Positions 1,177 through 51,868 of a stretch of 64,000 nt of DNA are shown piece after piece. Under the pieces are notes generated by a model. The model had not been told where the DNA came from. It made no database searches and saw only the letters and a list, made by a program, of their open reading frames with translations. Where the stretch lies: the IMG/VR virus record IMGVR_UViG_3300027996_002186, positions 186,001 through 250,000 of that record; one strand, given 5' to 3'. A program made the position numbers and the translations under genes. Position 1 is the first letter of the stretch, and every line of letters starts with the position of its first letter.

Positions 1177-3060
1177 TTATCTTTTAAGATTTTCCCAAAG
1201 TATTTGATAGATATCATCTATTTTATTATACTTTATTCTAATTAAATTAATATAATTATCTTCACAGTAATTCTTCTTAATTTTATCTATTTCCCTTATC
1301 CTATTTAGTGTTTTTAATCCCCCAAACTCATCTATTGGTTCAAAATGATGTCTACCATCAAATTCTATTATTGTTCTTGTTTTTGGTAGATAATAATTAA
1401 ATATTAAACCATCTATGTTGTGGTTTTTATAATACCTTATGTCATTTTCATCTAAGAAATGTGATATATAATTCATATACTTAAATTCATCACATTTTTT
1501 ACAACCTATTCCGTAATTTAAGTGTGTATATGCCCTTTGTATAAAGGAACCGTGTATAGGACACAAAACTTCTATATGTGAGTTTATATTTTTATATTCA
1601 TTTACATTTATAATGTATTTATATTTAAAATTGTGTGTTATTTGACACTTGGATATTAGTTCATTTATTTTATTTTCTCTTGTTTTCTTATAAACTTTAA
1701 CCTTTGGTTGCTTCGCCTTTTTTGCTTCTGTGAGAGAGTAATATTCTGCTAATATATTTTCTATGTTTTTATAATCGGTGAATTTTATCCTCAATAAATC
1801 TATTTTATTATCGGTACAAAACTTATTTTTAATATTATCTCTTATTTGTGTTTCCTTTAACTTTTTGATACCACCCCATGTTTCTATTATTTCCGAGTGT
1901 TGTGGTCCATCATATTCTATACAAGAATTGAATTTGGGTATATAAAAATCAAATTTTAAGTTTTTTTTATATTCACACCCCTCAAATTCCTTTTGTGATA
2001 TAAAATTCACTTTATATTTATTTAATAATTCCCTTATTTTAATTTCACCTTTACTTTCCTTGCATATAGGACATCCTGAACCATTAATATGTTCAATTGG
2101 TCGTTTTGAGAATTGTCCGTGGAGTGGACATATTATTTCTATTTTTGATTTTTTATTTTTGAAAATTGATTTTGAATAATCATACTTATTATTAAATGTT
2201 TTATTTGATATTTTTATAAATTCATGTATATTCATTGATAATTTTTTTAATCTAGAGCATTCCGGACATCCTTTTTTGTTATGTATGTGATGTGTTGCAT
2301 TTTTTTCGAAAATGCCGTGAGATGGACATATTATTTTAACTTTATCTCTTAGTGTTTTATAGTTTACTAATTCGTAATTGTATTTATAATTATGTATTTT
2401 ATTACAACTTTCTATAAATTCATCCTTTGATATTTTTATTCTTTCTTCTGTGCATAATGTACAACATTGGCCTTTGGTTATGTGTCTTTCTGGATTTAAT
2501 ATGAACTCCCCATGTTTTTTACAGATTGCTTTTATCGGTGATTTATAATCAAATATTCCCGGCTTTGTGTATTGGTAAAGACCATGGTATATATTGTTAG
2601 ATCTTTCTATAAATTCCACAAATGTAATTTTTTGACTTTCAGATTTATTAATTATCGAGCACTTCGGGCATTTACTACCCATCATATGGTTTGATGGTGT
2701 TGGGAAAAATGATCCGTGTTCTTTACAAACAACTTCCACTTTTGTTTTGCTATCGATTAAATTGACTTTTGTGTAATCATATATGTTTCCGTGTTTCCTG
2801 TTACTTCTTTCTATAAATTCACTCTTAGTTATTTTATTCTTTGATGTTATTTTATTTGTGTAGCATTCTTTACACCCAGTTGATCCATTTAGGTGTGTGT
2901 AAACTTTTTGTTTAAATCTATTATCGTGATCCCTGCATTTTATTTCTATATAATCGTGTGATTTAACATCACCATTTATATAATATTTATAATTATAATC
3001 TTTGTGTATATTTTTAACTCTCTCTAAGAATTTTTCTTTTTCCATGTTATTATATATCAT
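1177..3060 (-). CDS. free-standing homing-endonuclease-like protein: six zinc-ribbon (DUF723-like) repeats and two PD-(D/E)XK/Vsr-like nuclease domains
   Basis: Repeats C-x2-HG-x-F...H...G-C-x2-C; nuclease motifs FDFYIP..CIEYDGPQH and FNYYLP..IIEFDGRHH; real start may be ATG 3045 (MEKEK). Confidence 0.8.
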   Translation of the reverse strand: MIYNNMEKEKFLERVKNIHKDYNYKYYINGDVKSHDYIEIKCRDHDNRFKQKVYTHLNGSTGCKECYTNKITSKNKITKSEFIERSNRKHGNIYDYTKVNLIDSKTKVEVVCKEHGSFFPTPSNHMMGSKCPKCSIINKSESQKITFVEFIERSNNIYHGLYQYTKPGIFDYKSPIKAICKKHGEFILNPERHITKGQCCTLCTEERIKISKDEFIESCNKIHNYKYNYELVNYKTLRDKVKIICPSHGIFEKNATHHIHNKKGCPECSRLKKLSMNIHEFIKISNKTFNNKYDYSKSIFKNKKSKIEIICPLHGQFSKRPIEHINGSGCPICKESKGEIKIRELLNKYKVNFISQKEFEGCEYKKNLKFDFYIPKFNSCIEYDGPQHSEIIETWGGIKKLKETQIRDNIKNKFCTDNKIDLLRIKFTDYKNIENILAEYYSLTEAKKAKQPKVKVYKKTRENKINELISKCQITHNFKYKYIINVNEYKNINSHIEVLCPIHGSFIQRAYTHLNYGIGCKKCDEFKYMNYISHFLDENDIRYYKNHNIDGLIFNYYLPKTRTIIEFDGRHHFEPIDEFGGLKTLNRIREIDKIKKNYCEDNYINLIRIKYNKIDDIYQILWENLKR

Positions 3061-3154
3061 ATAATATACTTCCCCTTTATATTTTTTCTTATATATACTT
3101 TTCTTATATAAATAATTTTTTTTTCATAAAATCTATAAATGGGGCGTGAAAATT

Positions 3155-3163
3155 TAATATATA
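3155..3163 (+). promoter_or_regulatory. putative late-promoter box TAATATATA upstream of recA/uvsX
   Basis: The same 9-mer or a close variant precedes >20 genes on both strands. Confidence 0.6.
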
Positions 3164-3194
3164 ACATAAGAAAATTAAAAATTAAAAATTTAAA

Positions 3195-4421
3195 ATGGCA
3201 AAAAAGAAAGAAGTTAAAAAATTTGAATTTAGTAAAGTAGGGGCTATATTAGATAACATCGCTAAAACTGTGCCTATTCAAATAGAAACTGAGGTAAAGG
3301 AAAGGGAGTTTATAACTACTGGTGTTTATGTGTTAGATGCTGCTTTATCTGGGAAATTATTAGAAGGTGGTATTTCTACAAATCGAATTACAGCCTTTGC
3401 TGGTGAGTCAGGGTCAGGAAAATCATTTTTGGCATATTCTGTTTGTAGAAATGCTCAAAAGAAAGGATATTCGGTTATTTATATTGATACAGAACAAGCT
3501 GTTGATTTGGAAGATATGCCTAAGTTTGGTGTTGATAGTTCTCCAGAAAAATTTAGACTTATAAGATCTAATAAAGTTGAGGATGTTAATATTCTCCTTA
3601 CCCAATTAGTTGATGAGTTGAAAGAGCAAAAGATTAATGGGTTTGAAATACCAAAGTTGTTAATAGTTTTGGATTCACTTGGTCAGATGGCATCTAATAA
3701 AGAAAAAGAAGATTTGTTGAAAGGTAATATTAAACAAGATATGACAAAGGCGAAGGCCATGGGTTCTATGTTCCGAAGTATAAACACTGATTTGGGGTAT
3801 TTGAATATTCCATTTTTAGTATGTAACCATACTTACCTAACCATGGATCTTTTTCCACGAGCAGTGCTAAAGGGTGGTAATGGATTATTATATTCTGCTT
3901 CTGTTATTGGATTTATGAGTAAGTCTAAACTAAAAACGGGTGATGAAGATGATATGGATTTAGGATCATCTGGGATTAGTGTATTGTTCAAAACACAAAA
4001 GAATAGATTAGCTAAACCTAAGAAAATCAGATTTGATATCTCATTTGCTAATGGTATGAATCCTTTTACAGGGTTAGATGCTTTTTGTAGACCAGAATAT
4101 TTTGAACAAATAGGTATTGCTAAAGGTAAAATGGAAGTGAATAAAGAAACTGGTGAAATGACATTTAAACCAGGTGGTAATAGATGGTATGTTAACCATT
4201 TGAGTAAATCAGTTAGTAAGAAACAATTATTTAGACCAGATGTATTTACAAAAGAGGTGTTAGAAGCTATGAACCCTATTGTAAATGATTATTTTAGATT
4301 CAAATCAATTGATGAAATAGAAGAAGTTGAAAAACAATTCAATGAAGTTATTGAGGATGACGCGTATGATGATACAAACGGTTTCACAGATGCGTCAGAC
4401 GCAGAAGATATTTTCAAGTAA
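3195..4421 (+). CDS. uvsX: RecA/UvsX-family recombinase
   Basis: Walker A GESGSGKS, YIDTE, Walker B LIVLDSLG, DMTKAK, NHTY, GGNG motifs of T4 UvsX/RecA. Confidence 0.92.
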   Translation: MAKKKEVKKFEFSKVGAILDNIAKTVPIQIETEVKEREFITTGVYVLDAALSGKLLEGGISTNRITAFAGESGSGKSFLAYSVCRNAQKKGYSVIYIDTEQAVDLEDMPKFGVDSSPEKFRLIRSNKVEDVNILLTQLVDELKEQKINGFEIPKLLIVLDSLGQMASNKEKEDLLKGNIKQDMTKAKAMGSMFRSINTDLGYLNIPFLVCNHTYLTMDLFPRAVLKGGNGLLYSASVIGFMSKSKLKTGDEDDMDLGSSGISVLFKTQKNRLAKPKKIRFDISFANGMNPFTGLDAFCRPEYFEQIGIAKGKMEVNKETGEMTFKPGGNRWYVNHLSKSVSKKQLFRPDVFTKEVLEAMNPIVNDYFRFKSIDEIEEVEKQFNEVIEDDAYDDTNGFTDASDAEDIFK

Positions 4422-4434
4422 ATCTTGAAAACCA

Positions 4435-4446
4435 AACCTTCGGGTT
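4435..4446 (+). other. short cUUCGg hairpin between uvsX and the Hc1-like gene
   Basis: AACC-TTCG-GGTT; no U-tract follows, so more likely a stabiliser or processing site than a terminator. Confidence 0.4.
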
Positions 4447-4465
4447 ATAAAACAAATAAATAAAT

Positions 4466-4633
4466 ATGAAGCAAGAAATTTTTGAACAATTAAAGCAATT
4501 GTGGGAAACATTTGAAGAGAGTCACAACAAACCAACTAAGAAGTCTGATGGTGATGCTCGTAAAGCTCTAGGTGAGATTAAGAAGTTAGTTACATCTTAT
4601 AGAGCGGCGTCTGTTGAAGAAGCTAAAAAATAA
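4466..4633 (+). CDS. histone H1-like Hc1-family small protein (not in ORF track)
   Basis: 55 aa MKQEIFEQLKQLWETFEESHNKPTKKSDGDARKALGEIKKLVTSYRAASVEEAKK; ARKAL-x-E-x-K-K...YR-x-x-SV pattern of Bacteroidota/Chlamydia Hc1. Confidence 0.75.
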   Translation: MKQEIFEQLKQLWETFEESHNKPTKKSDGDARKALGEIKKLVTSYRAASVEEAKK

Positions 4634-4650
4634 AAATACTAATCATCACC

Positions 4651-4878
4651 ATGTTACAGAGAAGAATAAAGGAATTGTTAGAGGAAAAAAATGTTGAAAG
4701 TGGAAACTTCCCTATGGAAAAACTATATAAAGCAGGTATGGATAATGTTAGTAATAACATTGAGTACTATTTTGACAAACAATATACTTGTGAATCAGTT
4801 TTACAGGAACTCTTTGTACGTGGTGTGATTAGTTATATTGAAAAAAGAAAAAATAATTTTCCTTATTTAGAAAAATAA
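4651..4878 (+). CDS. hypothetical protein
   Basis: 75 aa ORF. Confidence 0.55.
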   Translation: MLQRRIKELLEEKNVESGNFPMEKLYKAGMDNVSNNIEYYFDKQYTCESVLQELFVRGVISYIEKRKNNFPYLEK

Positions 4879-4911
4879 GGTGGTGGATGTTCGACTTCCA
4901 AAGTCGGTCCC

Positions 4912-4943
4912 AAAAACCCTAATCTTATGATTGGGGTTTTTTT
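4912..4943. terminator. bidirectional intrinsic terminator
   Basis: AAAAACCCTAATC-TTAT-GATTGGGGTTTTTTT between convergent genes. Confidence 0.8.
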
Positions 4944-4962
4944 ATGGATATAATTTTATTTT

Positions 4963-5433
4963 TCAAAAATCACCATAATTTACTTGAAAACATGGAATAT
5001 CGTTTGATCTCCACATTGTTACTACTTGGTCTCTATCATCAAAAACTGAAATAATTCGATTTTTAGAATCATCAGGGAAAATTGTATCTAACCAATGTTT
5101 TTTAAGATCATCATCCTTCATATATGCGAATGTATTTGATGTTGGTCTCATTTTTAGAACATCAAATGGTATGTTGTATTTATTTAACCATTGTGTCGTT
5201 GTGGCTTTTGTTGCTTTGCTTCTTCCTGAGAAGATAACGATCTTGAATCCAGCTTTGTGAAGTGTTTGTAATGTTTGAATTACTGGATCATTTGGTAAGT
5301 CTAAATCGATATTTTTCGGATCAAAGAATTGTTTGAAATCCATTTTACCGTTTGTTTTGGTGGATAGTTTTCTACGTGCATCTATGTTTGCGATAGTACC
5401 ATCGAGATCGAAAATATAAGTATCTTTTGTCAT
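4963..5433 (-). CDS. HAD phosphatase resembling the 3'-phosphatase domain of T4 polynucleotide kinase
   Basis: FDLDGT, SGR, LKMRP, FDDR, CFQV motifs. Confidence 0.85.
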   Translation of the reverse strand: MTKDTYIFDLDGTIANIDARRKLSTKTNGKMDFKQFFDPKNIDLDLPNDPVIQTLQTLHKAGFKIVIFSGRSKATKATTTQWLNKYNIPFDVLKMRPTSNTFAYMKDDDLKKHWLDTIFPDDSKNRIISVFDDRDQVVTMWRSNDIPCFQVNYGDF

Positions 5434-5451: not shown

Positions 5452-5904
5452 TTAAGCGAGAATCAATTTAAGGAAGTTATCTCTCTTTTCAGACTTTGAT
5501 AGTTTCTTAGCACAAGATGGTCCAATTCCAGTTAAGATACTAGATGGTACTGTTAGTGGTCTATTACATTTACCACATCTTCCTTCATGCCAAACTTCTA
5601 TTTTTTCAGATAGATTCTTTGATTTTAATTTTTTCACAACATATTCGAAAACTTTAACAGATTGTGAATCTTTTGTTATTAAAGATTTCTTACCGTGTCT
5701 GTAATTACCTTCTACTGCCGTTCCGATGTAAGAATAATTATCTGGTCCATTTAGAAGACTTACGAAAAACAGGTTTGAATCTTTAGCTTGTTTCACTTTG
5801 AAAGTGAATCTGTTATTAGTTTCTACATTTAAGAATGTAGTCGTTGATTTACCCGAGAAGATAAATTTAAGAGCGTCTGTGTTATTTAATTTGTGTCCTT
5901 TCAT
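5452..5904 (-). CDS. DUF6011-like zinc-binding protein
   Basis: HEGRCGKCNRPLT..SI..GIGPSCA. Confidence 0.7.
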   Translation of the reverse strand: MKGHKLNNTDALKFIFSGKSTTTFLNVETNNRFTFKVKQAKDSNLFFVSLLNGPDNYSYIGTAVEGNYRHGKKSLITKDSQSVKVFEYVVKKLKSKNLSEKIEVWHEGRCGKCNRPLTVPSSILTGIGPSCAKKLSKSEKRDNFLKLILA

Positions 5905-11988: not shown

Positions 11989-12498
11989 TAAGAAAGTTTA
12001 ATGAAGTTGTGAACAAGGCACTTATCGTAAAGATAAAAATGGTTTGATTTTACTAAGGATTATAAAAAAAAAAAAGGTTATGGCAATAGAAATACAAGGG
12101 TTTGAAACAAGATTTGGTGATAGTTACGAAAAAGCATATGCTCGTATAGTTTCTTTAAGTATAAATTATACTAGGGAAATTGCAGAGGTTAGTATTGGGA
12201 TTTATAGAAGTGAGCTTGATAGGGAAATAGGAAAAGACCCCGTATCACTAGAAAAAAAATTAATTGAAGGTTCTCATTTTATAGAGTTTTTCAAAGAGCT
12301 TCAAGTAGATAAAATTGATGCCAGTATAAATCCAATAGCAGATATTTATAATGACCTAACTATAAGAGAGGGTAAATATAAAGGTGGAAAGAAGTTATAT
12401 GATGAGATGATAAATGATGAAGGTGAGGTAAAAGAAATTAGCAAAGATGAAAAACTAAAGGAAATAAAATGAACCATTTAAGAAAGTTTAATGAAGTT
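11989..12498 (+). repeat. 20-bp exact direct repeat TAAGAAAGTTTAATGAAGTT at 11989-12008 and 12479-12498
   Basis: Read directly; both copies encode the leader peptide RKFNEV and flank one gene. Confidence 0.85.
12080..12472 (+). CDS. hypothetical protein
   Basis: ORF-track ORF 12044-12472; ATG 12080 after an A-tract is the more plausible start. Confidence 0.7.
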   Translation: MAIEIQGFETRFGDSYEKAYARIVSLSINYTREIAEVSIGIYRSELDREIGKDPVSLEKKLIEGSHFIEFFKELQVDKIDASINPIADIYNDLTIREGKYKGGKKLYDEMINDEGEVKEISKDEKLKEIK

Positions 12499-12741: not shown

Positions 12742-12771
12742 AAAAAACCCAACTTAATCAGTTGGGTTTTT
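12742..12771. terminator. bidirectional intrinsic terminator
   Basis: AAAAAACCCAAC-TTAATCA-GTTGGGTTTTT. Confidence 0.75.
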
Positions 12772-12957
12772 AATTTTAAATATATTTTCTATTTTAGATT
12801 TCCTTATTAAATTTATAGTTCTTATAAAATATCTAGACTTGATAGATAACCTTGGTGTAAAGTTAGAATTAGAAATAGATTGTACTGTTTCTATTGGTAT
12901 ATAAGGCACCCAAACTAAACCTGATTGTAGTGAATTACTTGTTTTCTTACCCGTCAT
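12754..12957 (-). CDS. small protein containing a C-terminal-region fragment of gp23-type major capsid protein
   Basis: GLVWVPYIPIETVQSISNSNFTPRLSIKSRY aligns ungapped with T4 gp23 GIYYAPYVALTPLRGSDPKNFQPVMGFKTRY (recalled sequence). Confidence 0.65.
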   Translation of the reverse strand: MTGKKTSNSLQSGLVWVPYIPIETVQSISNSNFTPRLSIKSRYFIRTINLIRKSKIENIFKIKNPTD

Positions 12958-22552: not shown

Positions 22553-23152
22553 ATGAAATACGAAAAACAAAATATTTACTTTATATCAGATTTCCATGTT
22601 GGTCACAAAAACGTGTTAAAATTTGATGGTCGTCCTTTTCAGGACACAGAGGAAATGCACACTGAGTTAATCAAAAGATGGAATTCAGTAATCGAAGACG
22701 ATGATATTGTTTATTACTTAGGTGATTTAGCATTTTGTCGAGACGAACTAGCTCAATGGTTCATACATTCACTAAAAGGAAAAATACATTTTATAATGGG
22801 TAATCACGACAAACTTAAAAAAATACGTAAGTATGGTCGTTGGGAAGAAATCTATGAATATGGAACAGAAATCTTTATTAAAGATGAAGATTTGAAATCT
22901 ACTCGTGGTATGAACGGATATCAACAAATTATAATGACACATTATCCAATTTTAAGTTGGAACAGAGCACATTATGGTAGTTGGCATTTACACGGTCATT
23001 GTCATGGAAGTTTAATGAAGTCTAACCAAGATTATTACAAAAGAAAGGTAATAGATGTTGGTTGTAACGTAATAGATTATACACCAGCTTCTTATGAAGA
23101 AATAAAAGGTGTAATGCTTAAAAAGGATATTATATCAGTTGATCATCACTAA
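22553..23152 (+). CDS. calcineurin-like metallophosphoesterase
   Basis: SDFHVGH, LGD, GNHD, HYP, LHGHCH, DVG. Confidence 0.9.
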   Translation: MKYEKQNIYFISDFHVGHKNVLKFDGRPFQDTEEMHTELIKRWNSVIEDDDIVYYLGDLAFCRDELAQWFIHSLKGKIHFIMGNHDKLKKIRKYGRWEEIYEYGTEIFIKDEDLKSTRGMNGYQQIIMTHYPILSWNRAHYGSWHLHGHCHGSLMKSNQDYYKRKVIDVGCNVIDYTPASYEEIKGVMLKKDIISVDHH

Positions 23153-23340
23153 TGAGAAGTTTACAAACCGAATTAAAACACTTAAAAATGTTAATAAACT
23201 CAACATATTCAACTGGAACAAGAGATGGATATTTTGATGATGTCTATGATAGAATTAATGATAGAATTAAAGCTGTAAAATACAAAATATACAAAATTCA
23301 AAAACGAAAAAGTAAAATAAATAAATTATATGGAAGATAG
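23152..23340 (+). CDS. small hypothetical protein (RKSKINKL motif)
   Basis: 62 aa, translationally coupled on both sides. Confidence 0.65.
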   Translation: MRSLQTELKHLKMLINSTYSTGTRDGYFDDVYDRINDRIKAVKYKIYKIQKRKSKINKLYGR

Positions 23341-23662
23341 GTGGGATGTACAAAAAGTGTTTTGTATAAAAGCATATAAAACACTTAAACTTACTAGTGG
23401 TTACTCTATAAAAGGTAGAGGTAACTTAACATATAATGCTGACCCAGAAGTTGGTGGTAAAAAGGGCCACGGATATGGTATAGAAGATGATATGTTTGGG
23501 TATGATCCTGATAATGTTAATTGGTGGAAATTACCACATAATAAAAGAGTGAAAATGTACTACTTTACTGAAAGTGAAATGAGTGAATACTTTATCACTG
23601 ATAGTGAAAACTATAAGATATATTTAAGAGATCAAAAAATTAATAGTGTTATAAATGATTGA
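23330..23662 (+). CDS. hypothetical protein (C-terminal RDQKINSVI motif)
   Basis: 110 aa. Confidence 0.7.
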   Translation: MEDRWDVQKVFCIKAYKTLKLTSGYSIKGRGNLTYNADPEVGGKKGHGYGIEDDMFGYDPDNVNWWKLPHNKRVKMYYFTESEMSEYFITDSENYKIYLRDQKINSVIND

Positions 23663-24667: not shown

Positions 24668-25260
24668 AAAGGAGAGAGGATTTAGTCAGATTCATAAGAA
24701 GGTCCCAAACCTTTATATCAATTATGTTATTTTTTGGTGTGTTTTTATTTTGCTGGGATATTACCGGATTTGAATTAACAGAGATACAATTATCTAAATG
24801 GGGAGAAACAGGATCAATTGTTGAGAGAATTTGGAATGGTGTAATTTGTTTACTATCCATTTCTATATTTCTAAATACACATTTCTATATAAAGCATAAT
24901 AAAAGGATTAAGTATAAGAATGTGTCACACATAATGTTTTCATTTGTTTCATTTGTTTTATTTATGGTTGGATTCTTTAATGTTGATTATTATTTTTTAC
25001 ATAATTTTGGAGCTTATCTATACTTCTTTACATTTCCGTTTTTTATATTTTTGTTTGCTCATATACATAGAAAATCATTAAAATACCAAGATTGGATCCA
25101 CCACATGATATTATCTATATGTATGATGGTATTTCCTTTGATATTCTTATCATTTTTCAATGGTATGGCTATTTCGGAGATTGCTCATACAATATTTGTA
25201 GTTTTGTGGAACTTTAAAATAGCTTTTAAGAGAATATTACCTCATAACAGAAGTATTTAA
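24664..25260 (+). CDS. multi-pass membrane protein (DUF998-like)
   Basis: About 6 hydrophobic segments; LSKWG; H-x-x-GA; ATG 24664 overlaps upstream stop. Confidence 0.65.
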   Translation: MKRREDLVRFIRRSQTFISIMLFFGVFLFCWDITGFELTEIQLSKWGETGSIVERIWNGVICLLSISIFLNTHFYIKHNKRIKYKNVSHIMFSFVSFVLFMVGFFNVDYYFLHNFGAYLYFFTFPFFIFLFAHIHRKSLKYQDWIHHMILSICMMVFPLIFLSFFNGMAISEIAHTIFVVLWNFKIAFKRILPHNRSI

Positions 25261-25272
25261 GAGATTCGAAGA

Positions 25273-25299
25273 TAAACATTTTATTGTATTAATATATAA
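25273..25299 (+). promoter_or_regulatory. TAAAC-N17-TATAA promoter overlapping a late box
   Basis: TAAAC 25273-77, TATAA 25295-99; TAATATATA 25290-98 lies 4 nt before ATG. Confidence 0.6.
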
Positions 25300-25858: not shown

Positions 25859-26242
25859 ATGGCGATAACGAAAAACAAAATACAATTAATGGATAATACT
25901 TTATCTCTAGAGTTAGAGTTAGAGTTAGACTATTATTGTTATTATTGGAATTATTACTATGAAGATTATGATTATGATTGGGAAGATGAAAGAGAACCTT
26001 GTTGGCGATATTTAGAAACTCCTAACATTACTTATAATATAATAGAGACTAGAGGAAATGCTAAGTATTTTAGAAGAAATGTTATGGATATTGGTAAGAT
26101 GATAGATATGGATACTATATATACAAAGGAAAAAATGAGAGAAAGAAAGATAGATCAAATACTTGGATTACTTCCAGATTATGTTAATAACCCAACACTT
26201 GGTGATTTTTTCCACAAAAAAGAAATAAATTATGAAGATTGA
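25859..26242 (+). CDS. hypothetical protein, Tyr/Asp-rich tract and RERKIDQIL motif
   Basis: 127 aa; GAGTTA x3 microrepeat encodes LELELEL. Confidence 0.65.
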   Translation: MAITKNKIQLMDNTLSLELELELDYYCYYWNYYYEDYDYDWEDEREPCWRYLETPNITYNIIETRGNAKYFRRNVMDIGKMIDMDTIYTKEKMRERKIDQILGLLPDYVNNPTLGDFFHKKEINYED

Positions 26243-27718: not shown

Positions 27719-27789
27719 GGTCGGGTGGCCGAGTGAATAGGTGGAGACCTGCAAAGTCTTTTACGGTGGTTGAAATCCATCCCCGACCT
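27719..27789 (+). tRNA. tRNA-Cys(GCA)
   Basis: Acceptor GGTCGGG/CCCGACC, anticodon arm GAGAC-CTGCAAA-GTCTT, T arm GGTGG-TTGAAAT-CCATC, discriminator U; CCA not encoded. Confidence 0.9.
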
Positions 27790-27836
27790 CTAATTTTCCT
27801 TTTTAAGTCTATTGAGTTGTTTAATTGATATATTTT

Positions 27837-33988: not shown

Positions 33989-35830
33989 TTAGATATTTGG
34001 ATTATCCGCTCGATATTTATCATATCTGTTAGCAATTTCAATTAAGAACTTATTTCTAACAATATCATTATTATTAAACTCGAATAAATTCAATTTATCC
34101 ATACCCGTTACCATTCCGATAAAATCTAGATATCCAGAATCTTTCTTCCTAACATCATATTGTGATGTATCTCCCATCATAACAGCTTTTGACTCTCTGC
34201 CTAATCGAGTTACCCACAACATTAATTTTTTAACAGATGCGTTTTGACACTCATCTAATAACATTACACAGTTATCATACGTTGATCCTCTCATGTAAGC
34301 TAGTGGCTCAAATATAATTTCTTCTGATGCGAATAAAAAATCTGTTTGTTGTCTTCCTATTATCTTTACGAATGTGTTGTAGTATGATCTTTTATATGGG
34401 TCTAACTTTTCCTGCATATCACCTGGTAAGAATCCTAAATTTTCACCACTTTCTTGTACCGGTTTTGTTATTATTATTCTTTCTACTTTCTTATCTGCTA
34501 GTAAGGCTAATGCCGTATAACACGTTGTGAATGTGTTGTGTGTAACAATATAATTATTGGTTAAATATAAGTGTGTAGGATGATCTACTTTTATACATTG
34601 AGCTTCTTTAACACCAATAAGACTCGCTGATACTATATACCTACATGGTTTGTATTTAGTCTTAGGTATAACTCGGTCAAATTTTCTCCTTAATGAAAAA
34701 GGATTTATATCTGGATTCATTTTAATTGTTAAATTATATGATGTTCTTCCTTGTTTCACCACACCTTTGTGTGTGTAATTTTCATTTCTTGGTGTTTGAT
34801 CTGTGGATATACCACCCAATGATTGTACCAATTCCTTTACATCTTCTATTAATTCCTTTGAGGTTGAGCAAAAGCTAACGTATGTACCATCTTTTGATAC
34901 CGTACCATCTGTATCCATTAACCCTCTTAACATAGATATTCTATTATCAACACTGTTATACTTATAACAATCTGGTATAAATTTTTCATATGATAATTTA
35001 CCCCATATTCCAATTTTTTTAAGATATTGTTTTAATTTATTCTCCCTTGTTGTTTTTTCCTTAACTAAGGCAAAGTCATAACCTCCTCTATCAGATACAC
35101 TTATATCATCATCTAATAAGTTTGTTATTTTTTCGATAATTTCAGAATCCGCTGTGCTAAATCCAACATGGTGTCTCAAACAACCATCACCTATTAAACA
35201 ACCCAATATATATGGATCAATTTCCAATTCTCTTTCAGTAAAATTTACAGGTGATGTAATTGGTATTGTGTGGTTTATTCTACCACGATTTGTATAAAGA
35301 GTGTCTATTATTTCACTGGTTGTTTTTGTGGATCCACTTTTTGGTGATTTATACCTATTCCTAACACCATTTACTGTTTTTGTCCATTCCCTATTATTTC
35401 TATCAGATTCAGTTTGTGTATTCCATAAATGATCGGAACAGCATTCCACTTTTGATCCATCAGAAAATGTTAATTCCCATATTTCCTTTTCACCTTGTGG
35501 GAAAACACCGGTCACTATCGTTGAGTTGCCATCCACAGACATGACCCTATCACCAATTTCCAAATCACCCATTTTTACCCATCCATCGGGTGTTAGTATT
35601 GGTGAATCTAGTGGCTGTGCCTTTGATGTACCAGCTGGGCCGTGAACGGCTGTTAATATACTGTTTCTTATTCCTTTATATAATAAGTGTTGTTTTGGTG
35701 TTAATTCTACTCTAGACTTATTAAATTCAGCTTTTGTTAATGAATTCTTCTTTCTTGATATTTTCTGAAATTCATAATCTTTTATTCCGGTTTTTACTTC
35801 TTCATTTTGATCTTGTTTTCTTCTACTCAT
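33989..35830 (-). CDS. phoH: PhoH-family ATPase containing an intein
   Basis: GPAGTSK|T P-loop, LGFLPGD, LAYMRG, LDECQN, GDTSQ, DIVRN. Confidence 0.9.
   Translation of the reverse strand: MSRRKQDQNEEVKTGIKDYEFQKISRKKNSLTKAEFNKSRVELTPKQHLLYKGIRNSILTAVHGPAGTSKAQPLDSPILTPDGWVKMGDLEIGDRVMSVDGNSTIVTGVFPQGEKEIWELTFSDGSKVECCSDHLWNTQTESDRNNREWTKTVNGVRNRYKSPKSGSTKTTSEIIDTLYTNRGRINHTIPITSPVNFTERELEIDPYILGCLIGDGCLRHHVGFSTADSEIIEKITNLLDDDISVSDRGGYDFALVKEKTTRENKLKQYLKKIGIWGKLSYEKFIPDCYKYNSVDNRISMLRGLMDTDGTVSKDGTYVSFCSTSKELIEDVKELVQSLGGISTDQTPRNENYTHKGVVKQGRTSYNLTIKMNPDINPFSLRRKFDRVIPKTKYKPCRYIVSASLIGVKEAQCIKVDHPTHLYLTNNYIVTHNTFTTCYTALALLADKKVERIIITKPVQESGENLGFLPGDMQEKLDPYKRSYYNTFVKIIGRQQTDFLFASEEIIFEPLAYMRGSTYDNCVMLLDECQNASVKKLMLWVTRLGRESKAVMMGDTSQYDVRKKDSGYLDFIGMVTGMDKLNLFEFNNNDIVRNKFLIEIANRYDKYRADNPNI
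34535..35620 (-). mobile_element. class 3 intein (362 aa) with LAGLIDADG homing endonuclease, in the PhoH P-loop
   Basis: Starts AQPLD, block B DHLW, block F AQCIKV, ends VTHN/T; LGCLIGDG and LRGLMDTDG motifs. Confidence 0.88.
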
Positions 35831-36153: not shown

Positions 36154-39100
36154 ATGTGGATATTCGATAATGATTATAATAAATGGTCTTCTAGTGGTGA
36201 TAATTTAGTTAAGAGTGAGTTTGATTACTTAAAACAAGAGTTATCATCTGTTAGATTCTATTCTAAGTGTTTGAGTGGTGCTGCATACTTACCTATGAAT
36301 AATATAAACAATATATATGATATATTAGGTGAATATAAGCCTAGAAACTGGTATATTGGTTTGGGTGGATCACCTTATAGTAATTCACTTATACCACCAC
36401 AAAATGCTGTTGAAATAACTAATGATTCATCATATGATTATTATACTAAATATTTATCTGAATATGGATTAACATTAAAAAACCTATTCACACCAAATAG
36501 ATTAATAAGTGATTCTATTAATAACTACATATATGTTGATGTTACCACAACAACTCAAATATTTGATTTATATGATCCTGTTATTAATAGGGTTATTGAT
36601 GGTACTAGACTTTTAGATGGTCATAGAATTTTAATAAAAGATCAAAAAACAACAGAAGTTTTACCAAATACGACTAACCCAGATGATTATTTCAGTGGTA
36701 ATTATACAGAAATTCAAAATTTCGGTACAACAATACAATATGAATATTATAGTAATGAAAATGGTATTTATAAATATGAAAATTTTTTATTATCAAAAGA
36801 ATCTGATTTAGATGATTATGAAGATTGTGTTAGGTTTAGTATTATTGCTAAGTTAGGTGCTAATAACAGAGAAAAGCAATTTCATTTATCTAGATTATTA
36901 AATGGATATTATCCAACATCCTCATTGGATCAACCAATGGAATTCATCGAAAAACATAATTGGTTACTAAGAAACAGAGTTGATTATAATAATTTATTTG
37001 AGATAAACTATTATGACGTTATAAAACATGGCGAACAATCTTATGAGATTGGTGGTATTACTTATAGTATACCAGAAAGAACTATATCTGTTGGTGAGTT
37101 TGGTGTTATACTAAATAACCAAGAGAATGTCTCTAATATTATTAGTAATAAGTATAAAGTTAATTTAAGAAGTATTTCACAAACATCTAAATATTATTGG
37201 ATTTGTGGTGATGGTGGTGTTTTATTGAAAGTTAGGAAACATGATTTTAATGTTGAGAGAATTGAAGTTGAAAACTTAACAACATCCAATTTAAAATCTG
37301 TTTCATTTTTTGATAATTTGAGAGGTGCTGTTGTCGGTGATTTAAATACTATTTTAGTTACAAATGATTCTGGATTTCATTGGGAAGTTATTAAAATACC
37401 AGACTTCGATACTTATTATTATAATAAGGTTATTTTTTATGACCCTAATAAGTTTTTCATAGGTGGTAATGTTGGTGTGTTTATTGAGTTTATAAAAGAT
37501 TTATCTGGATGGACAGCTTATAGAAGAAGAATATCTAGATTCATAGATGGATCAACACCACAAAACACAAGTGGTGAGGATGAGTATTTACTAGTTGATA
37601 ATATTAATGATATGTTATATACAAACATAGATACCTGGGGATTAACACATTCTCATAATTACGGTAGTCAATCGATTTCTGTTGATAAAGAATTGTTATT
37701 TATAGTTACTGATGATAGTAAATTTATAGTACACGATATTAATAATTCAATTCCCGACTATGATTTTCTTTATTTAGATTTTAGATCAAATGATATTGAA
37801 TTACATGAATATGGTGATATTAGAAATATATCTCGGAGAGAAGGAACTAATGATTTTTATTTTACTGGTATAAATGATATTAATATCGAAAGTGGTTTAT
37901 TTTCCTTCAATATTAATCTTTTTAGTGAAATTGGTGTTGAACATAATAACGATATTGAATACTCAAATACAATAACAACAACCGCTTCAGCTACATTTGA
38001 ATCAAATTTATATTCGAATAATACTTTCGATTATTTAGGTGATGAAATGATTTTATGTGGAAATGAATCTTTATTGAGAAGTTCAACTTATAGTACTACA
38101 TTTAATTTTGAAATTCTTGATGAGAATTTTGAGTCGAGGCTAAAGTCTAAGATGTTATTTTTGGATTATGATATGGGTTCTAAGCTAAATTTCTTCACAG
38201 ATGATGGTCAATATAGATTACCGAATTCCTTATCATTCCCGGCTGATTTATTTTCATCAACTTCTTCTATATCGCTTAGTTCGTTAGTTTATGGTGCTAC
38301 ATCACCTAGCTTTATGACACAATCAGAAGTTAGTTGGTTTGATTATTGGTCAGATAGGTATAAAACATTTGAATTTTATTCTACTGGGTTACCATTGGAT
38401 GAATCAACAAAAGTTTTATTATCCTCAGATTTTTCATATTCACCAACTCAATCAGAATTAATCATATCCTCAATAACAGATACTTTTTCTGATATAGAAA
38501 ATTTAGCTCCTAATATTTATAATAGAAGTCTTGGTAGATTTAATGGTGCTGGTATGACTGCTATATCAGCCCCATCATCATCATATGATTTATATTTATA
38601 TGATTATTTAATGGTTGCTAAAGTAGCAGATGATTATGAGGTTGTGGTTGGTGATGCTTTTGGATTAGAAAGTAATGTTGTTAATTCTGAATTTGTTGTT
38701 AATAAGATTGCTGAATTTGGTGGTGATAAATATTTATATATGTTTAGTGAGTTTAATCAAAACATTATAACCGAATTATCAACTACTACATATTCCGTGA
38801 CTCTGACAAATCTGAATAAATATTCTGATGTTGATGAGTTACAGGAAAGATTTAACACACATCCTATATCAAATGGTTATGAGTTAATACGTGGTTCATC
38901 AGTTAATAATGGGGTTTTGATGGACTTTGAGTTTGGAACAACAGCATCTTATATAAATTGGGTTGTTGATAACAACTTGGAATTCGACCCGATTTTCGGG
39001 GGTCGACCTGATGTGGCTAAAACATTAAACCAAAATACAACATATATAATAGAATCACCTGAGGTTGAGGGTGTTGATCTCGTATCCTTTTTATATAATT

Positions 39101-47810: not shown

Positions 47811-47813
47811 GAT

Positions 47814-48107
47814 ATGAAATATTTAAGAAAATATAACGAGTCAAACGAACAAGAGCAAGATTTAGATTTTGTTTTAGCTAAGATAAAAGAAGAGTTTACT
47901 ATTGATAAGGTTAAAGAATCTTATGAAAAAGAAATGCTTGAATGGGCAGATGATTACACTACAAGTGGTAATGGTGAGGCACAAGACATTATATTAGAAC
48001 AGATGATTGGGTGGTTCGAATCAAACCATTCTGAGCTTACAGATGAAGTATCTAAAGAAGTTTATAATAAATTACAAGAAGAATACGAATTCCTAAACAT
48101 TGGTTAA
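47814..48107 (+). CDS. acidic hypothetical protein with CTS-like leader
   Basis: 97 aa MKYLRKYNES. Confidence 0.75.
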   Translation: MKYLRKYNESNEQEQDLDFVLAKIKEEFTIDKVKESYEKEMLEWADDYTTSGNGEAQDIILEQMIGWFESNHSELTDEVSKEVYNKLQEEYEFLNIG

Positions 48108-48120
48108 TAATTTTCTATAA
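48094..48120 (+). promoter_or_regulatory. TAAAC-N17-TATAA promoter
   Basis: TAAAC 48094-98, TATAA 48116-20. Confidence 0.6.
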
Positions 48121-48139
48121 TAAGAAAATATTAATTTAA

Positions 48140-48631
48140 ATGACTCAAAGCTCTAAAGAAGAATTACTTCAAAAATGGGCACCTATTATCGATTCAATGG
48201 GTGTTACTGGTTCAAAAGCAGATTGGATGTCACAATATGTTGAAATGCACTCTATTAATGAGAATCAAATATCATCAACTCAATCCAATTTTAATTTAAC
48301 ACTATTACCTATAGCTAAAAGAGTTTTTGCTAAAACGGTTAGTTTAGATTTGGTAGATGTTAATCCTATTGGTGGTGGAAACTCATCTAATGAGATGAAA
48401 GAAATAAGATCTGATATTAAAATTGAAAATCGTGATAGAAAAATAGATTCTATTACAGAAGATAAATGTTTTGATGAAATGAAAGTCGAAGACCACCCTA
48501 AATATAAAGAACAACAAATGCCTAAGAGTAATTTATTTTATTTGGATTATCAATATGGTGGTGGTACATCTAGTAACACACATAAAAAGACTAGAAGAAG
48601 TAAAAAGAAAAAGAAAAATGAAAAAGTTTAA
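48140..48631 (+). CDS. truncated N-terminal paralog of gp23-type major capsid protein with an insertion
   Basis: MTQSSKEELLQKWAPIID resembles T4 gp23 MTIKTKAELLNKWKPLLE; LLPIAKRVFAKTVSLDLVDVNPI...LFYLDYQYG resembles the gp23 VRR...DICGVQPM...VFALRAVYG region. Confidence 0.7.
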   Translation: MTQSSKEELLQKWAPIIDSMGVTGSKADWMSQYVEMHSINENQISSTQSNFNLTLLPIAKRVFAKTVSLDLVDVNPIGGGNSSNEMKEIRSDIKIENRDRKIDSITEDKCFDEMKVEDHPKYKEQQMPKSNLFYLDYQYGGGTSSNTHKKTRRSKKKKKNEKV

Positions 48632-48839
48632 TAAACTTAAAATAGAAAGGGATTATTGGTTTCCTAACCGAGTTAATACATATTCTAGAAAAAGGAGTAT
48701 TGCTAAAATATTTGATTTTGAATATGAGGACCTTTTATTATCCAATCCACAAGTCCTTTGGGGTAGTAATACTGCTCAACCCAGAAGAACATTTACAATA
48801 CCAGTTGGTGAAAAGAGCAAAAAAAACTATGTTGGGTAG
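48618..48839 (+). CDS. small hypothetical protein (RKRSIAKIF motif)
   Basis: ATG 48618 in frame with ORF-track ORF 48555-48839. Confidence 0.55.
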   Translation: MKKFNKLKIERDYWFPNRVNTYSRKRSIAKIFDFEYEDLLLSNPQVLWGSNTAQPRRTFTIPVGEKSKKNYVG

Positions 48840-48901
48840 TATAAAATCCTTATTGAGAAAATATAAATAAAAGGTAATCATGTGAGTATAATATATACTC
48901 T

Positions 48902-49231
48902 ATGATTAAAATTTACTTGATATGTGCTGAAATTGGTGGTGAAAAACTTCACAAGATAGGATACACAAAACGTACTATTGAGCAAAGAATAAAGGAATTT
49001 AAGACAGGTAACGCTTCTGAATTTTATATTGTTGATTCATTTGAATCAAAGTGGGGTACGATGGTTGAAGCTCAGTTACACAAAATTTTTAGAGATAAAA
49101 AGGTTAATGGTGAGTGGTTTGATTTAGATGAAGATGATATACTAAAGTTTAGAGAAATGTGTAAACAAATAGATAATAATCTAGAAGTTGTTTCACAGGG
49201 CAACTACTATTTAGAAAAAGGTAAGTTTTAA
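48902..49231 (+). CDS. GIY-YIG/T5orf172 (Mug113-like) domain protein
   Basis: IYLI...HKIGYT...RIKE...E..LH..F...NGEWF. Confidence 0.85.
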   Translation: MIKIYLICAEIGGEKLHKIGYTKRTIEQRIKEFKTGNASEFYIVDSFESKWGTMVEAQLHKIFRDKKVNGEWFDLDEDDILKFREMCKQIDNNLEVVSQGNYYLEKGKF

Positions 49232-49255
49232 ACTTTTTAGAATTAAAAAATATAA
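49229..49255 (+). promoter_or_regulatory. TAAAC-N17-TATAA promoter
   Basis: TAAAC 49229-33, TATAA 49251-55. Confidence 0.6.
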
Positions 49256-49270
49256 AAATAAAATATTGTT

Positions 49271-49543
49271 ATGGTATCAGTAAAAGAAAATAGTATTAGA
49301 GAGTACATATCTAATATAGACTTCAAAAGAGATGATTGGGGACTTGCTCAAATAAAAGAAGATATGAGAAAATTCTTAGGAGAAGAACCTGGTATTGATG
49401 TTGTTTATAAAAAAGATGTTATGATTAATGAAGTTACTGGTGATGCACATGAATTCAAAGGTATTAAGAGTGTATCAGTAATATTTTTTGATACTGATGA
49501 TAAGTTTAAGAAACTAGAATTTCTAATAGATGATAAAATATGA
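49271..49543 (+). CDS. hypothetical protein
   Basis: 90 aa. Confidence 0.7.
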   Translation: MVSVKENSIREYISNIDFKRDDWGLAQIKEDMRKFLGEEPGIDVVYKKDVMINEVTGDAHEFKGIKSVSVIFFDTDDKFKKLEFLIDDKI

Positions 49544-49752
49544 ATTATTCAAACTATTATTTAGATTTAGAAAAGGTTGGTGAATTAAAAACACAAAGTG
49601 ATAAAGATAAAATACACAGTTATTATACTGATATGTTACATTCTGCTCATGATAAAAGAGAAGAAGTGGCTAAATCTATTTTTAATACATTATTTAATAA
49701 TAAGTATTTGAAAGAAGTTCGCGATGAGAAAATTGAACAAATATTATCTTGA
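49540..49752 (+). CDS. small hypothetical protein (C-terminal RDEKIEQIL motif)
   Basis: 70 aa, ATGA overlap. Confidence 0.7.
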   Translation: MNYSNYYLDLEKVGELKTQSDKDKIHSYYTDMLHSAHDKREEVAKSIFNTLFNNKYLKEVRDEKIEQILS

Positions 49753-50060
49753 TGGAAATAAAAGCTGATATATTAGAATACTTAGGTAAGTTTGATGAGG
49801 GTATCATTGTACTACTTACATTATCATATGATGATGAATACTATGAATGTACTTTATACTATAAAGATAAATTAGTAGCTTTAACACCCGAAGAAAGATT
49901 AGAAGAAAAACTTGGATCAGTTATAGAAGACTGGGAAGGTTATAATGATTTAATGATGGATATACTTAAAAGAGTAGTTCCTTATGATGAAATGATTGGT
50001 AGGTGTGATGAGATTGATATGTCTCAATATGGAATCGTATTAGATAATAAATCAGAATAA
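49749..50060 (+). CDS. hypothetical protein
   Basis: 103 aa acidic. Confidence 0.7.
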   Translation: MMEIKADILEYLGKFDEGIIVLLTLSYDDEYYECTLYYKDKLVALTPEERLEEKLGSVIEDWEGYNDLMMDILKRVVPYDEMIGRCDEIDMSQYGIVLDNKSE

Positions 50061-50063
50061 CAA

Positions 50064-50090
50064 TAAACTTACATTACAAAAATGATATAA
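50064..50090 (+). promoter_or_regulatory. TAAAC-N17-TATAA promoter
   Basis: TAAAC 50064-68, TATAA 50086-90. Confidence 0.6.
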
Positions 50091-50111
50091 ATAAAAAATA
50101 ATCATATTTGA

Positions 50112-51815
50112 ATGCTTATAAGTGAAATAGGAATTAGGGGTTATAAATCATTTGGAAACAATGAACAAGTCTTAAAATTAAATACGGAAAGAGGTGAATT
50201 ACTACTTCTTGTCGGTAACAACGGTAATGGTAAATCTTCATTACTAGAATCTTTTGAATACGTACTTTATGGTAAAGTAAAGTCAGGTAAAACAAAGAAA
50301 TGGCACAAGTTGTCAACACTACCAAATAGAATAAACGGAGAACTTCTTAATAGAATAAAATTTGTTGCTAATGGAACAGAGGTTGAAGTTAAACGTGGTA
50401 TATCACCAGGTATCTTAGAATTAACCGAAAATGGTGTTGTTAATGAAAGAGCTGGTAAATCAAACATAGACGATCATATAGAAAAGTATATTGGGTTAGA
50501 TATTGAGACATTTAAGTCCTTTATATCAATGTCTATTAATGATTTCAAAAACTTTATATCATTAACTAATGAAGAAAAGAAATTATTACTTGATAAATTA
50601 TTTAATCTTGAAGTTATTAATGTACTCAATGGTATATTAAAGGATATCAATAAAAATAATAAAGTTAGATTAGCTTCTTTGGATTCTGAGATAAGAACAT
50701 TAGAAGAATCGATTGATTCTATTAAGAGGTCAGTTGCTAAGGCTATTGAAAGAGAGAAAGAAGATCTTCAACAAGAGATAGATGTTTTAATTAAAGAAAT
50801 GAACTCTAAGAAAGGAGATTACAAGTTATTAAAAGAAAAAGTTGAGAAGATAAAGGGTAAAGAGAAAATTTTAACCAAAGAAATGGATACTGAGAAAAGT
50901 CAGTATAGTAATACAAAGAATGATATTAAGAATGTTCAGAGGGAAATAGACCTTTATGATTCTGGTAAATGTCCTACTTGTTCAACTGATTTCAAATCAA
51001 CACATTTTGCTGATTTGAGAACTTCTTTATTGGAGAAGAAACAAGGATTTGATGATATTAAACTTGAAATCGAAGAAAATATTAAAAGTGTTAAGGCTAA
51101 ACAAGTTAAATTGAAAGAAATAGCTGATGGTACAACAACATCATTTAACGATTTATCTTACTTACTACGTAATTATAAAACTAAGATTGATGAATTATCA
51201 AGAAAGCAGGGTAGGGAGATTGGTAAAGAATCTATTAATGTACAAGAGTTTCAAAAAACAATTGAAGAGTTAGAAGAAAAGAAAGGTTTTAGCCACGATA
51301 ATATCTCTATTAGTAAAGAAAAGGAACTTTATTATAAAGAGTTGAATCGCATATTTGGTGAGGATGGTGTTAAGAAAGCAATTATCGCTGGTATTATTAA
51401 ACCAATAAACCATTTCATAAAAGAGAATGTTAAAACAATGGGGTTACCATTTGATGTTCAGTTAGACGAAACGTTTACTGCTGAGATTAAAATGTTAGGT
51501 GTTCCCATTGAACATGATTCATTATCAACTGGTGAAACTAAAAAGATAAATATTGCTATTTTGATAGCTTATTTGAAATTGATACGAACTAAGAAACATA
51601 TCAATATACTCTTCTTAGATGAAGTATTTGCCTCTATTGATATAGAGGGAATAGATTCTATATTGGGTCTCTTAAAATCATTCGCAAACGACTATAATAT
51701 CAATATATTTGTTGTTCATCACGCAATTTTAAGTCAGGAGATGTTTGATAGAATTATTAAAATAAATAAAGATATTTTTTCATCTGTTGAAGAGGTGGTT
51801 TATGAGTATGTCTAA
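50112..51815 (+). CDS. SbcC/Rad50-like recombination endonuclease subunit (T4 gp46)
   Basis: GNNGNGKSS Walker A, coiled coil, CPTC zinc hook, LSTGE signature, LFLDE Walker B. Confidence 0.92.
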   Translation: MLISEIGIRGYKSFGNNEQVLKLNTERGELLLLVGNNGNGKSSLLESFEYVLYGKVKSGKTKKWHKLSTLPNRINGELLNRIKFVANGTEVEVKRGISPGILELTENGVVNERAGKSNIDDHIEKYIGLDIETFKSFISMSINDFKNFISLTNEEKKLLLDKLFNLEVINVLNGILKDINKNNKVRLASLDSEIRTLEESIDSIKRSVAKAIEREKEDLQQEIDVLIKEMNSKKGDYKLLKEKVEKIKGKEKILTKEMDTEKSQYSNTKNDIKNVQREIDLYDSGKCPTCSTDFKSTHFADLRTSLLEKKQGFDDIKLEIEENIKSVKAKQVKLKEIADGTTTSFNDLSYLLRNYKTKIDELSRKQGREIGKESINVQEFQKTIEELEEKKGFSHDNISISKEKELYYKELNRIFGEDGVKKAIIAGIIKPINHFIKENVKTMGLPFDVQLDETFTAEIKMLGVPIEHDSLSTGETKKINIAILIAYLKLIRTKKHINILFLDEVFASIDIEGIDSILGLLKSFANDYNINIFVVHHAILSQEMFDRIIKINKDIFSSVEEVVYEYV

Positions 51816-51868
51816 TGAAAAAGCTACAAATTCATGAAATAAAACTAAAACAATTAGGTATAAATTAA
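51815..51868 (+). CDS. possible 17-aa micro-ORF MKKLQIHEIKLKQLGIN
   Basis: TAATG overlap with gp46 stop; consists almost entirely of the recurrent motif. Confidence 0.3.
   Translation: MKKLQIHEIKLKQLGIN

Follow-up and report, generated by a model that had tools for sequence, protein, structure and literature searches.

Short peptides shared by otherwise unrelated proteins are known to direct secretion, organelle import, encapsulin loading, and proteolysis. Among phages, a comparable signal is the capsid-targeting sequence (CTS) of T4, which sits on several unrelated proteins and addresses them to one viral structure; it is N-terminal, ~10 residues long, confined to a handful of late proteins, and cut off by the prohead protease at L/I-x-E. 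Here we describe a short helix, mostly C-terminal, that recurs on ~8% of the proteins (about one in thirteen) of an uncultured huge phage. The DNA analyzed, referred to below as the window, is a stretch of 64,000 nucleotides, bases 186001 to 250000 of one 483,262-bp contig (IMG/VR virus record IMGVR_UViG_3300027996_002186) with a G+C content of ~29%. We conclude that the helix is probably a recognition tag shared by its bearers and read by one trans-acting partner, and we tentatively propose that the reader is the phage's own ClpC-type unfoldase, which lacks an N-domain.

The tag differs from the T4 CTS in being C-terminal, in having no adjacent protease site, in occurring on ~50 proteins, and in avoiding the promoter class of the capsid gene. 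Encapsulin cargo peptides and the C-terminal helix of the P22 scaffolding protein are likewise C-terminal elements that dock on an HK97-fold shell, the P22 scaffolding-coat contact also depends on basic residues, and a minimal HK97-fold protein is encoded in the genome studied here. However, the encapsulin cargo-loading consensus is extended and Gly/Ser/Leu-rich, of the LTVGSL type, unlike the tag, and here the HK97 paralogue is itself tagged. Clp-recognized signals (ssrA, ClpX C-motifs such as MuA RRKKAI, and the ClpX-binding tail of SspB) are short, C-terminal, and placed on unrelated proteins for one AAA+ reader, and the tag co-occurs with a ClpC-type unfoldase, with a tag-like protein encoded directly upstream of clpC. 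The tag nevertheless has no sequence likeness to these signals, is predicted to be helical, ends in polar residues, and is sometimes internal, and ClpC normally relies on its N-domain and adaptors, whereas the phage ClpC has no N-domain. With the RxLR motifs of oomycetes and the PEXEL motifs of Plasmodium the analogy is one of logic only: in both, one short motif is the only conserved part of a large, fast-evolving set of small parasite proteins, but those motifs are N-terminal, follow a signal peptide, and serve export from eukaryotic parasites. Membrane-targeting helices of the MinD/FtsA type are C-terminal and amphipathic, as is predicted here for residues 60 to 72 and 227 to 245 of two bearers; they are basic or aromatic and loose in sequence, with no conserved acidic residues, whereas the tag has an invariant Arg1 and conserved residues at positions 2 (Asp/Glu) and 6 (Asn/Asp). 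The tag departs in position, sequence, or context from the CTS, encapsulin, Clp, and RxLR/PEXEL systems and is thus not a member of any of them, and a literature search found no report of a bacterial virus that marks ~8% of its genes with one C-terminal tag.

Greedy calling of the longest open reading frames (ORFs) gave 645 genes covering 94% of the contig; start codons may be in error, while gene ends are unaffected. In this proteome, which is rich in K, I, L, D, and N, the strict pattern R[DEK].K[IL]..[IL] matched 42 times, compared with 3.5 ± 1.9 times in per-protein shuffles, and none of 500 shuffles reached 42. As a control for a pattern chosen after it had been seen, we used 300 patterns with the same columns in permuted order; these gave a mean of 4.0 ± 2.4 matches, the sole outlier (24 matches) being a near-copy that matched the same sites. 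No more than 12 residues followed the motif in 33 of the 42 strict matches, against 4.8 expected under uniform placement (p ~ 1e-23). An iterated position-specific scoring matrix (PSSM), with its threshold set at a 0.1% false-positive rate per shuffled protein, found 49 bearers where 0.65 would be expected, 40 of them C-terminal by the same limit of 12 residues. The motif is real, and chance is excluded as its source. The enrichment and the C-terminal bias thus bear out a first-pass annotation of the window, which had described the motif as recurrent and usually near the C terminus, but its count of "about ten" bearers was a large underestimate, given ~49 in this genome and 57 in the related phage LR745206.

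The consensus is [hydrophobic]-R-[DE]-x-K-[IL]-[NDK]-x-[IL]-[LFI], followed by 0 to 11 (usually 1 to 8) mostly polar residues. Most bearers are orphan proteins of 60 to 250 amino acids (aa), with a median length of 112 aa compared with 165 aa for all genes, and the charge, hydropathy, and composition of their bodies (the protein without the motif) were the same as those of other small proteins. An apparent bias toward odd or even tail lengths in this genome (29 versus 9) was rejected, as it was not reproduced in LR745206 (28 versus 18).

In a six-frame translation, the 42 strict matches in the coding frame compared with 7 and 0 in the other sense frames and 6 antisense. The motif Arg is encoded by AGA, AGG, CGT, CGA, and CGC and the Ile/Leu positions by ATH, CTN, and TTA, and no conserved sequence was found 3′ of the stop codon among the bearers. 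Since the signal is frame specific and varied in its codons and has no conserved sequence downstream, the motif acts at the level of protein, and a nucleotide-level element is excluded. The next gene is on the same strand after 33 of 40 bearers, often with an overlap of 4 to 17 nucleotides, and on the opposite strand after the other 7. A nascent-peptide or translational-coupling signal is unlikely because of these 7 cases and because the distance to the stop codon varies.

The bearers are not one paralogous family by the available tests. The 49 motif-trimmed bodies gave only 3 marginal BLAST pairs and thus have no detectable similarity upstream of the motif, nearly all of them were without a family in Pfam and PHROGs, and the two bearers that we modeled have different folds, in keeping with the first-pass description of the proteins as unrelated. 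Several bearers look like diverged pieces (30 to 35% identity) of larger proteins of the phage: the major capsid protein has six such relatives (two of them in the window, at 12754 to 12957 and 48140 to 48631), the UVR motif of the ClpC middle domain has one, and a 1,055-aa protein of unknown function has two, and a 158-aa tagged protein (genome 168710 to 169186) resembles only the P-loop core of a RecA/UvsX-like protein (window 3195 to 4421, + strand). Such matches to larger proteins were found for 7 of 41 small bearers and 25 of 427 other small proteins (p = 0.015). The idea that insertion of a motif plus stop codon had split larger genes, such as the capsid gene, was rejected; bearers at 368 to 375 kb of the genome are interspersed with unrelated complete genes for a dCMP deaminase, a NusG-like protein, and an RNase H-like protein.

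Two loci in the window are relics in which only the last 11 to 14 codons survive of genes that encode full proteins of 117 and 99 aa in LR745206. The body ahead of the relic at 25248 to 25292, which matches the C terminus KKYLRDSKIKDILGY of the 117-aa protein, has been replaced in this genome by a hydrophobic 203-aa ORF. In the relic at 51815 to 51868, 10 of 11 residues equal the LR745206 C terminus IREIKLKQLGIK, the invariant Arg having become His, and nothing else of the 99-aa protein, which has a UVR motif, was found in the window. Gene bodies have evidently been replaced while the tag-coding end stayed, with a break that seems to fall just upstream of the tag, and this hints at how the tag reaches unrelated bodies.

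LR745206 (634,780 bp), an uncultured phage, is the nearest record in the phage collection, with ~80% nucleotide identity over a quarter of a 10-kb probe; our gene-by-gene analysis covered the first 393 of its 635 kb. The major capsid proteins of the two phages are 78% identical, and more distant capsid relatives occur in Prevotella Lak megaphages (30%), Tenacibaculum phage PTm1 (28%), and Chryseobacterium phage MA9V-1 (24%). In the 22 bearers with orthologues in the part of LR745206 analyzed, the nine tag positions were 77% identical compared with 53% for the rest of the protein, and R1, K4, [IL]5, and [IL]8 were kept. In the family of the HK97 paralogue, whose members share 25 to 59% identity overall, 4 of the 9 invariant alignment columns are tag residues, and members with only 25 to 35% identity to the query still end in L-R-D-x-K-I-[ND]-x-[ILV]-L; the tag is conserved in the same manner in a family of 73-aa proteins. 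The major capsid protein, by comparison, is 72 to 87% identical in the same genomes. Because the tag persists at such low overall identity, these alignments indicate that it is kept by purifying selection while its bearers evolve fast.

The same part of LR745206 contained 55 strict matches, of which 42 were C-terminal, against 3.0 expected. Among 63 IMG/VR loci around capsid genes of 69 to 100% identity, there were 56 matrix matches in 1,458 genes (1.5 expected), and for one exact codon version of the tag searched in IMG/VR, in-frame matches at ORF ends made up 50 of 65 hits in homologous loci and 7 of 57 elsewhere. A 13-column tag profile run on whole records gave 37 matches in the phage's own genome, 57 in LR745206, and 35, 18, 26, 24, 15, and 15 in clade records of 476, 385, 313, 281, 165, and 67 kb, respectively. 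It gave none in PTm1, MA9V-1, Lak-B6, T4, and two unrelated complete records and 0 to 1 in each of five Bacteroidota genomes, on which ground a signal borrowed from the host was rejected. On these searches, the tag is a trait of one sizeable clade of huge phages and not of AT-rich phages generally or of the host phylum. The peptide EYKDEKIAQAF at residues 49 to 59 of T4 gp23, in the cleaved N-terminal piece, had a profile score of 1.6 and was treated as a chance likeness. CheckV estimated the completeness of our 483,262-bp record at 98%, an estimate that is unreliable for the huge phages of this clade, among which records rated 91 to 94% complete lack a capsid gene and must be partial.

Two bearer families were modeled from alignments of clade homologues, and in both the tag, of ~10 residues, is predicted to form a terminal amphipathic α-helix with its hydrophobic positions 5, 8, and 9 on one face. 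In the 73-aa family (genome 144915), a small β-domain is followed by the tag as helix 60 to 72; a fold search with this model gave no significant match, the nearest nonsignificant ones being domains made of a sheet plus a C-terminal helix. The other model, of a 250-aa protein encoded at genome 144179 to 144931, has a complete minimal HK97 fold (predicted local distance difference test score, 85) with an extra terminal helix (227 to 245) that bears the tag. Its best fold matches were T4 gp23/gp24 and encapsulins (E ~ 1e-6). The gene lies 4.5 kb downstream of the major capsid gene, and the product may be a vertex protein. Its homologues MA9V1_157 of MA9V-1 and ORF-116 of PTm1 end without the terminal helix, and both genomes are free of the motif; because of these outgroups, the tag was in this case demonstrably added to an older protein, as judged by sequence comparison. 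PDB sequence searches with a capsid-like bearer and the capsid protein gave nothing useful, and look-alikes of two larger bearers in the ESM Atlas gave no usable lead. Taken together, these results fit the first-pass proposal of a portable tag for one shared partner in that the signal is at the protein level, sits on unrelated bodies, is conserved, and was added to an older fold in at least one case.

The instances in the window are listed in Table 1, together with the proteostasis genes that lie elsewhere in the genome. All 11 peptide strings of the first-pass list were present in the ORFs to which it had assigned them, six of them as solid members and one as a relic; three were rejected and one, in the 627-aa protein encoded at 1177 to 3060, is probably coincidental, so that three to five in all are not members.

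Table 1. Tag instances and coincidental matches in the window (window coordinates) and proteostasis genes outside it (genome coordinates).
Coordinates	Strand	Feature	Motif (coding positions)	Residues after motif	PSSM score	Assessment
12754-12957	-	67-aa bearer	RKSKIENIF (12778-12804)	7	18.8	Solid
23152-23340	+	62-aa bearer	RKSKINKL(Y) (23305-23331)	2	6.9 (subthreshold)	Solid; strict match
23330-23662	+	110-aa bearer	RDQKINSVI (23627-23653)	2		Solid
25248-25292	+	Bearer relic; no open frame upstream	QKYLRDSKINILLY-stop			Relic; not in first-pass list
25859-26242	+	127-aa bearer	RERKIDQIL (26138-26164)	25	25	Solid
48140-48631	+	163-aa protein, internal tag-like motif	RDRKIDSIT (48431-48457)	57		Solid
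49540-49752	+	70-aa bearer	RDEKIEQIL (49720-49746)	1	25	Solid
51815-51868	+	17-codon relic, 3′ end of gene for 99-aa UVR-motif protein of LR745206	IHEIKLKQLGI			Relic
1654-1680	-	Internal match in HNH/homing endonuclease (gene 1177-3060)	RENKINELI	158		Probably coincidental
35021-35047	-	Internal match in LAGLIDADG intein of PhoH gene (33989-35830)	RENKLKQYL		20.8	Probably coincidental; not in first-pass list
Genome 360461-362341		Hsp70				Outside window
Genome 352898-353989		DnaJ				Outside window
Genome 315339-317453		ClpC				Outside window
Genome 68605-69276		ClpP				Outside window
Genome 36628-37386		ClpP				Outside window

Counterparts in LR745206 carry the tag in each solid case. The body of the bearer at 12754 to 12957 resembles residues 511 to 556 of the major capsid protein (tblastn; Pfam Gp23, 3.5e-8), and its orthologue retains RKRKIENIF. 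The bearer at 23152 to 23340 is solid solely through its positional counterpart (LR745206, 265897 to 266055), which ends in RKSKIKNI. Its neighbor at 23330 to 23662 has Val at motif position 8 and was for that reason missed by the strict pattern; the orthologue (70% identity) ends in YLRDRKINSIIND. The tag of 25859 to 26242 is identical in its orthologue against 51% identity elsewhere in the protein, and the orthologue of 49540 to 49752 has RDEKIDQIL. The motif had been thought absent from leader-bearing proteins, which the protein at 48140 to 48631 contradicts: its first ~80 residues resemble residues 8 to 112 of the major capsid protein (leader plus N-arm; E, 1e-11). Its tag is identical in the LR745206 orthologue, and small homologues occur in other clade records.

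The match in the gene at 1177 to 3060, probably coincidental, coincides in part with the opening helix of an endonuclease module that is repeated in the protein and continues, after this helix, with a C-P-x-H-G treble clef. The protein itself is a multimodule HNH/homing endonuclease of repeated DUF723, treble-clef, and DUF559-like units, with a 353-aa relative in LR745206. The PhoH-like ATPase gene is split by its intein at about residues 55 to 430, and the PhoH of LR745206 (251 aa, 89% identity) has no intein. The three rejected strings were KDEKLKEI at 12044 (no Arg; PSSM score, 1.6), RKRSIAKIF at 48555 (PSSM score, 6.5), and RDNFLKLIL at 5452, which has no Lys and is the tail of a DUF6011 family protein. 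Outside the window, the genome encodes a protease-scaffold fusion (135766 to 137907), and next to the portal gene a 151-aa protein (genome 132825 to 133280, - strand) carries YKREIKLNxLL at residues 33 to 43 throughout the clade, ~100 residues from its C terminus, and this stretch may be an N-proximal use of the same helix. The window also contains a tRNA-Cys (GCA) gene at 27719 to 27790 (+ strand).

The host is probably a member of the Bacteroidota, because the phage Hsp70 is 63 to 69% identical to Bacteroidota DnaK and the Bacteroidota-type promoter word TAnnTTTG occurs in many intergenic regions, a few bases 5′ of the start codon. Its distance of 4 to 8 nucleotides from the ATG implies that the mRNAs would be nearly leaderless. 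A second, phage-type promoter-like word, TTAATATATA[AC], lies 5 to 25 nucleotides 5′ of ~130 start codons, including those of the capsid operon, uvsX, and clpC; an example is the region at 3090 to 3194 of the window, upstream of the gene at 3195. With promoter classes assigned by these simple word matches, 7 of 44 bearers fell in phage-type operons compared with 49% of other genes (p = 1.5e-5), and in LR745206 the figures were 6 of 48 and 42% (p = 2e-5). Host-type operons in LR745206 contained 22 of 48 bearers and 24% of other genes (p = 0.003). Because the bearers avoid phage-type operons and, in LR745206, favor host-type ones, they are, by analogy, probably mostly early genes.

The phage encodes a proteostasis set of Hsp70, DnaJ, ClpC, and two ClpP paralogues, and the position of the tag at the C terminus, the tag-like protein of the clpC operon, the UVR mini-proteins, and the way in which early-type bearers fit with a clpC gene behind a phage-type promoter are why we favor ClpC, tentatively, as the reader. 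ClpC, a double AAA+ protein of 704 aa, contains the UVR middle domain as well as a VGF loop for docking on ClpP; the N-domain is missing. A phage-type promoter lies directly upstream of its gene. Of 9 records with the motif, 8 encode a ClpC of this kind, whereas the 6 records lacking the motif have none. Immediately upstream of clpC, each of the 8 genomes examined has a gene for a protein of 117 to 143 aa (140 aa in this phage) that ends in a tag variant, RR[ED]xI[LI]xx[IV]L, with Ile, Leu, Val, or Arg in place of Lys4. Two tagged mini-proteins have a UVR motif similar to the one in the ClpC middle domain. On this proposal, ClpC would act together with ClpP of either phage or host origin. Early proteins would be tethered or delivered by their tag to the ClpC machine and be remodeled or cleared once ClpC accumulates from its phage-type promoter.

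Several observations weigh against ClpC as the reader. The clpC-linked protein has no Lys at the position where this residue is elsewhere almost invariant. Nor does co-occurrence with ClpC count as independent evidence, as the positive records are one clade sharing hundreds of genes, and Hsp70 is equally widespread in that clade. A structured helix that is internal or N-proximal in a few conserved cases (g275193, g132825, and 48140 to 48631) is atypical of a degron recognized by a pore, its last residues are polar, unlike those of ssrA-type tags, and a degradation tag on a capsid-protein paralogue is awkward. The promoter classes, finally, are word matches whose timing is assigned by analogy. 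Which motif-rich records have ClpP, the HK97 paralogue, or Hsp70 is not decisive, since several "complete" IMG/VR records lack a capsid gene and must be partial. A wider version of the ClpC proposal, which we regard as rather improbable, is a proteome-wide addressing system in which about fifty early proteins are handed to ClpC(-ClpP) by their C-terminal helix, either to time the lifetime of the early proteome or as "bait plus tag" adaptors; some tagged proteins would then mimic pieces of self-assembling proteins (the capsid protein, RecA/UvsX, and the ClpC middle domain), and the adaptors would drag bound host or rival-phage proteins to destruction.

It is possible, if unlikely, that the helix docks instead on a host hub, so that early takeover factors are anchored to one host structure, such as RNA polymerase, the nucleoid, the divisome, or the membrane surface. 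Small orphans that avoid the phage-type promoter and, in LR745206, favor the host type are what one expects of early takeover genes; the tag, like docking helices, combines Arg/Lys and Ile/Leu on its conserved face; and the failure to find the motif in the five Bacteroidota genomes marks it as an invention of the virus and not a signal taken over from the host. The difficulty is that some fifty different proteins would have to compete for one site. Plain membrane binding is further disfavored by the conserved acidic position 2 and Asn/Asp position 6. A hydrophobic segment is present in only 3 of 40 bearers.

Addressing to the capsid or prohead, in which the helix would bind the shell or scaffold, so that small proteins are loaded into the head and the vertex-like HK97 paralogue is held in place, seems to us distinctly unlikely. 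It would suit the tag on a complete minimal HK97-fold paralogue near the capsid gene, the tag on the 73-aa family adjoining that paralogue, and the motif or a variant of it on all of the small proteins with a likeness to the major capsid protein's body. Yet bearers are strongly depleted from operons with the capsid gene's phage-type promoter, which also makes the second addressing system parallel to the N-terminal leader, as suggested by the first-pass annotation, less likely as a capsid route. By hand count, a prohead-protease site (L/I-x-E) precedes the tag in ~4 of 40 bearers compared with ~7 expected, and several motif-rich records, which are possibly partial, yielded no HK97 paralogue.

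Equally doubtful is the view that there is no common partner and that the helix self-associates or completes the fold of its own protein, by dimerizing or by packing on its own β-sheet, and has spread by recombination at gene ends. The helix of the 73-aa model does follow a small β-sheet, as in its nearest nonsignificant fold matches, the helix of the HK97 paralogue is modeled with confidence, and the two relics record body exchange with the tag-coding end retained. Packing would nevertheless hardly explain why unrelated folds share the same invariant and exposed residues (Arg, Asp/Glu, and Lys), and nine residues are too few for a stable coiled coil.

A client tag for the phage Hsp70/DnaJ chaperones is improbable. 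Both chaperones are phage encoded, Hsp70 lies behind a host-type promoter and is present in motif-rich records, and two co-oriented bearers lie directly upstream of dnaJ, but Lak-B6 has Hsp70 and no motif. DnaK, moreover, prefers extended hydrophobic cores with basic flanks and disfavors acidic residues, unlike the predicted helical tag with its conserved Asp/Glu. The Hsp70 of Lak-B6 (MK250025.1, 396810 to 400110) seems to be encoded in two separate open frames (profile positions 1 to 195 and 196 to 599) ~1.5 kb apart, which could be the effect of an insertion, an intron, or an alternative genetic code.

Chance in a K/I/E/N-rich proteome, or a DNA or RNA element (promoter, terminator, or recombination site) at gene ends, might be thought of in a genome of 29% G+C whose proteins are rich in K, I, L, D, and N but can be dismissed in view of the twelve-fold excess over shuffles and permuted patterns, the restriction to the coding frame, the synonymous and six-fold codon variation, the lack of conserved downstream sequence, and the conservation of the motif in orthologues.

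Confirmation of the tag would open an approach to dozens of orphan proteins from uncultured huge phages, in that a single peptide could retrieve the partner common to them, and the tag itself, being compact and transferable, could serve in engineering. For the phages themselves, the two relics suggest that new small genes arise by the swapping of bodies before a retained tag-coding end.

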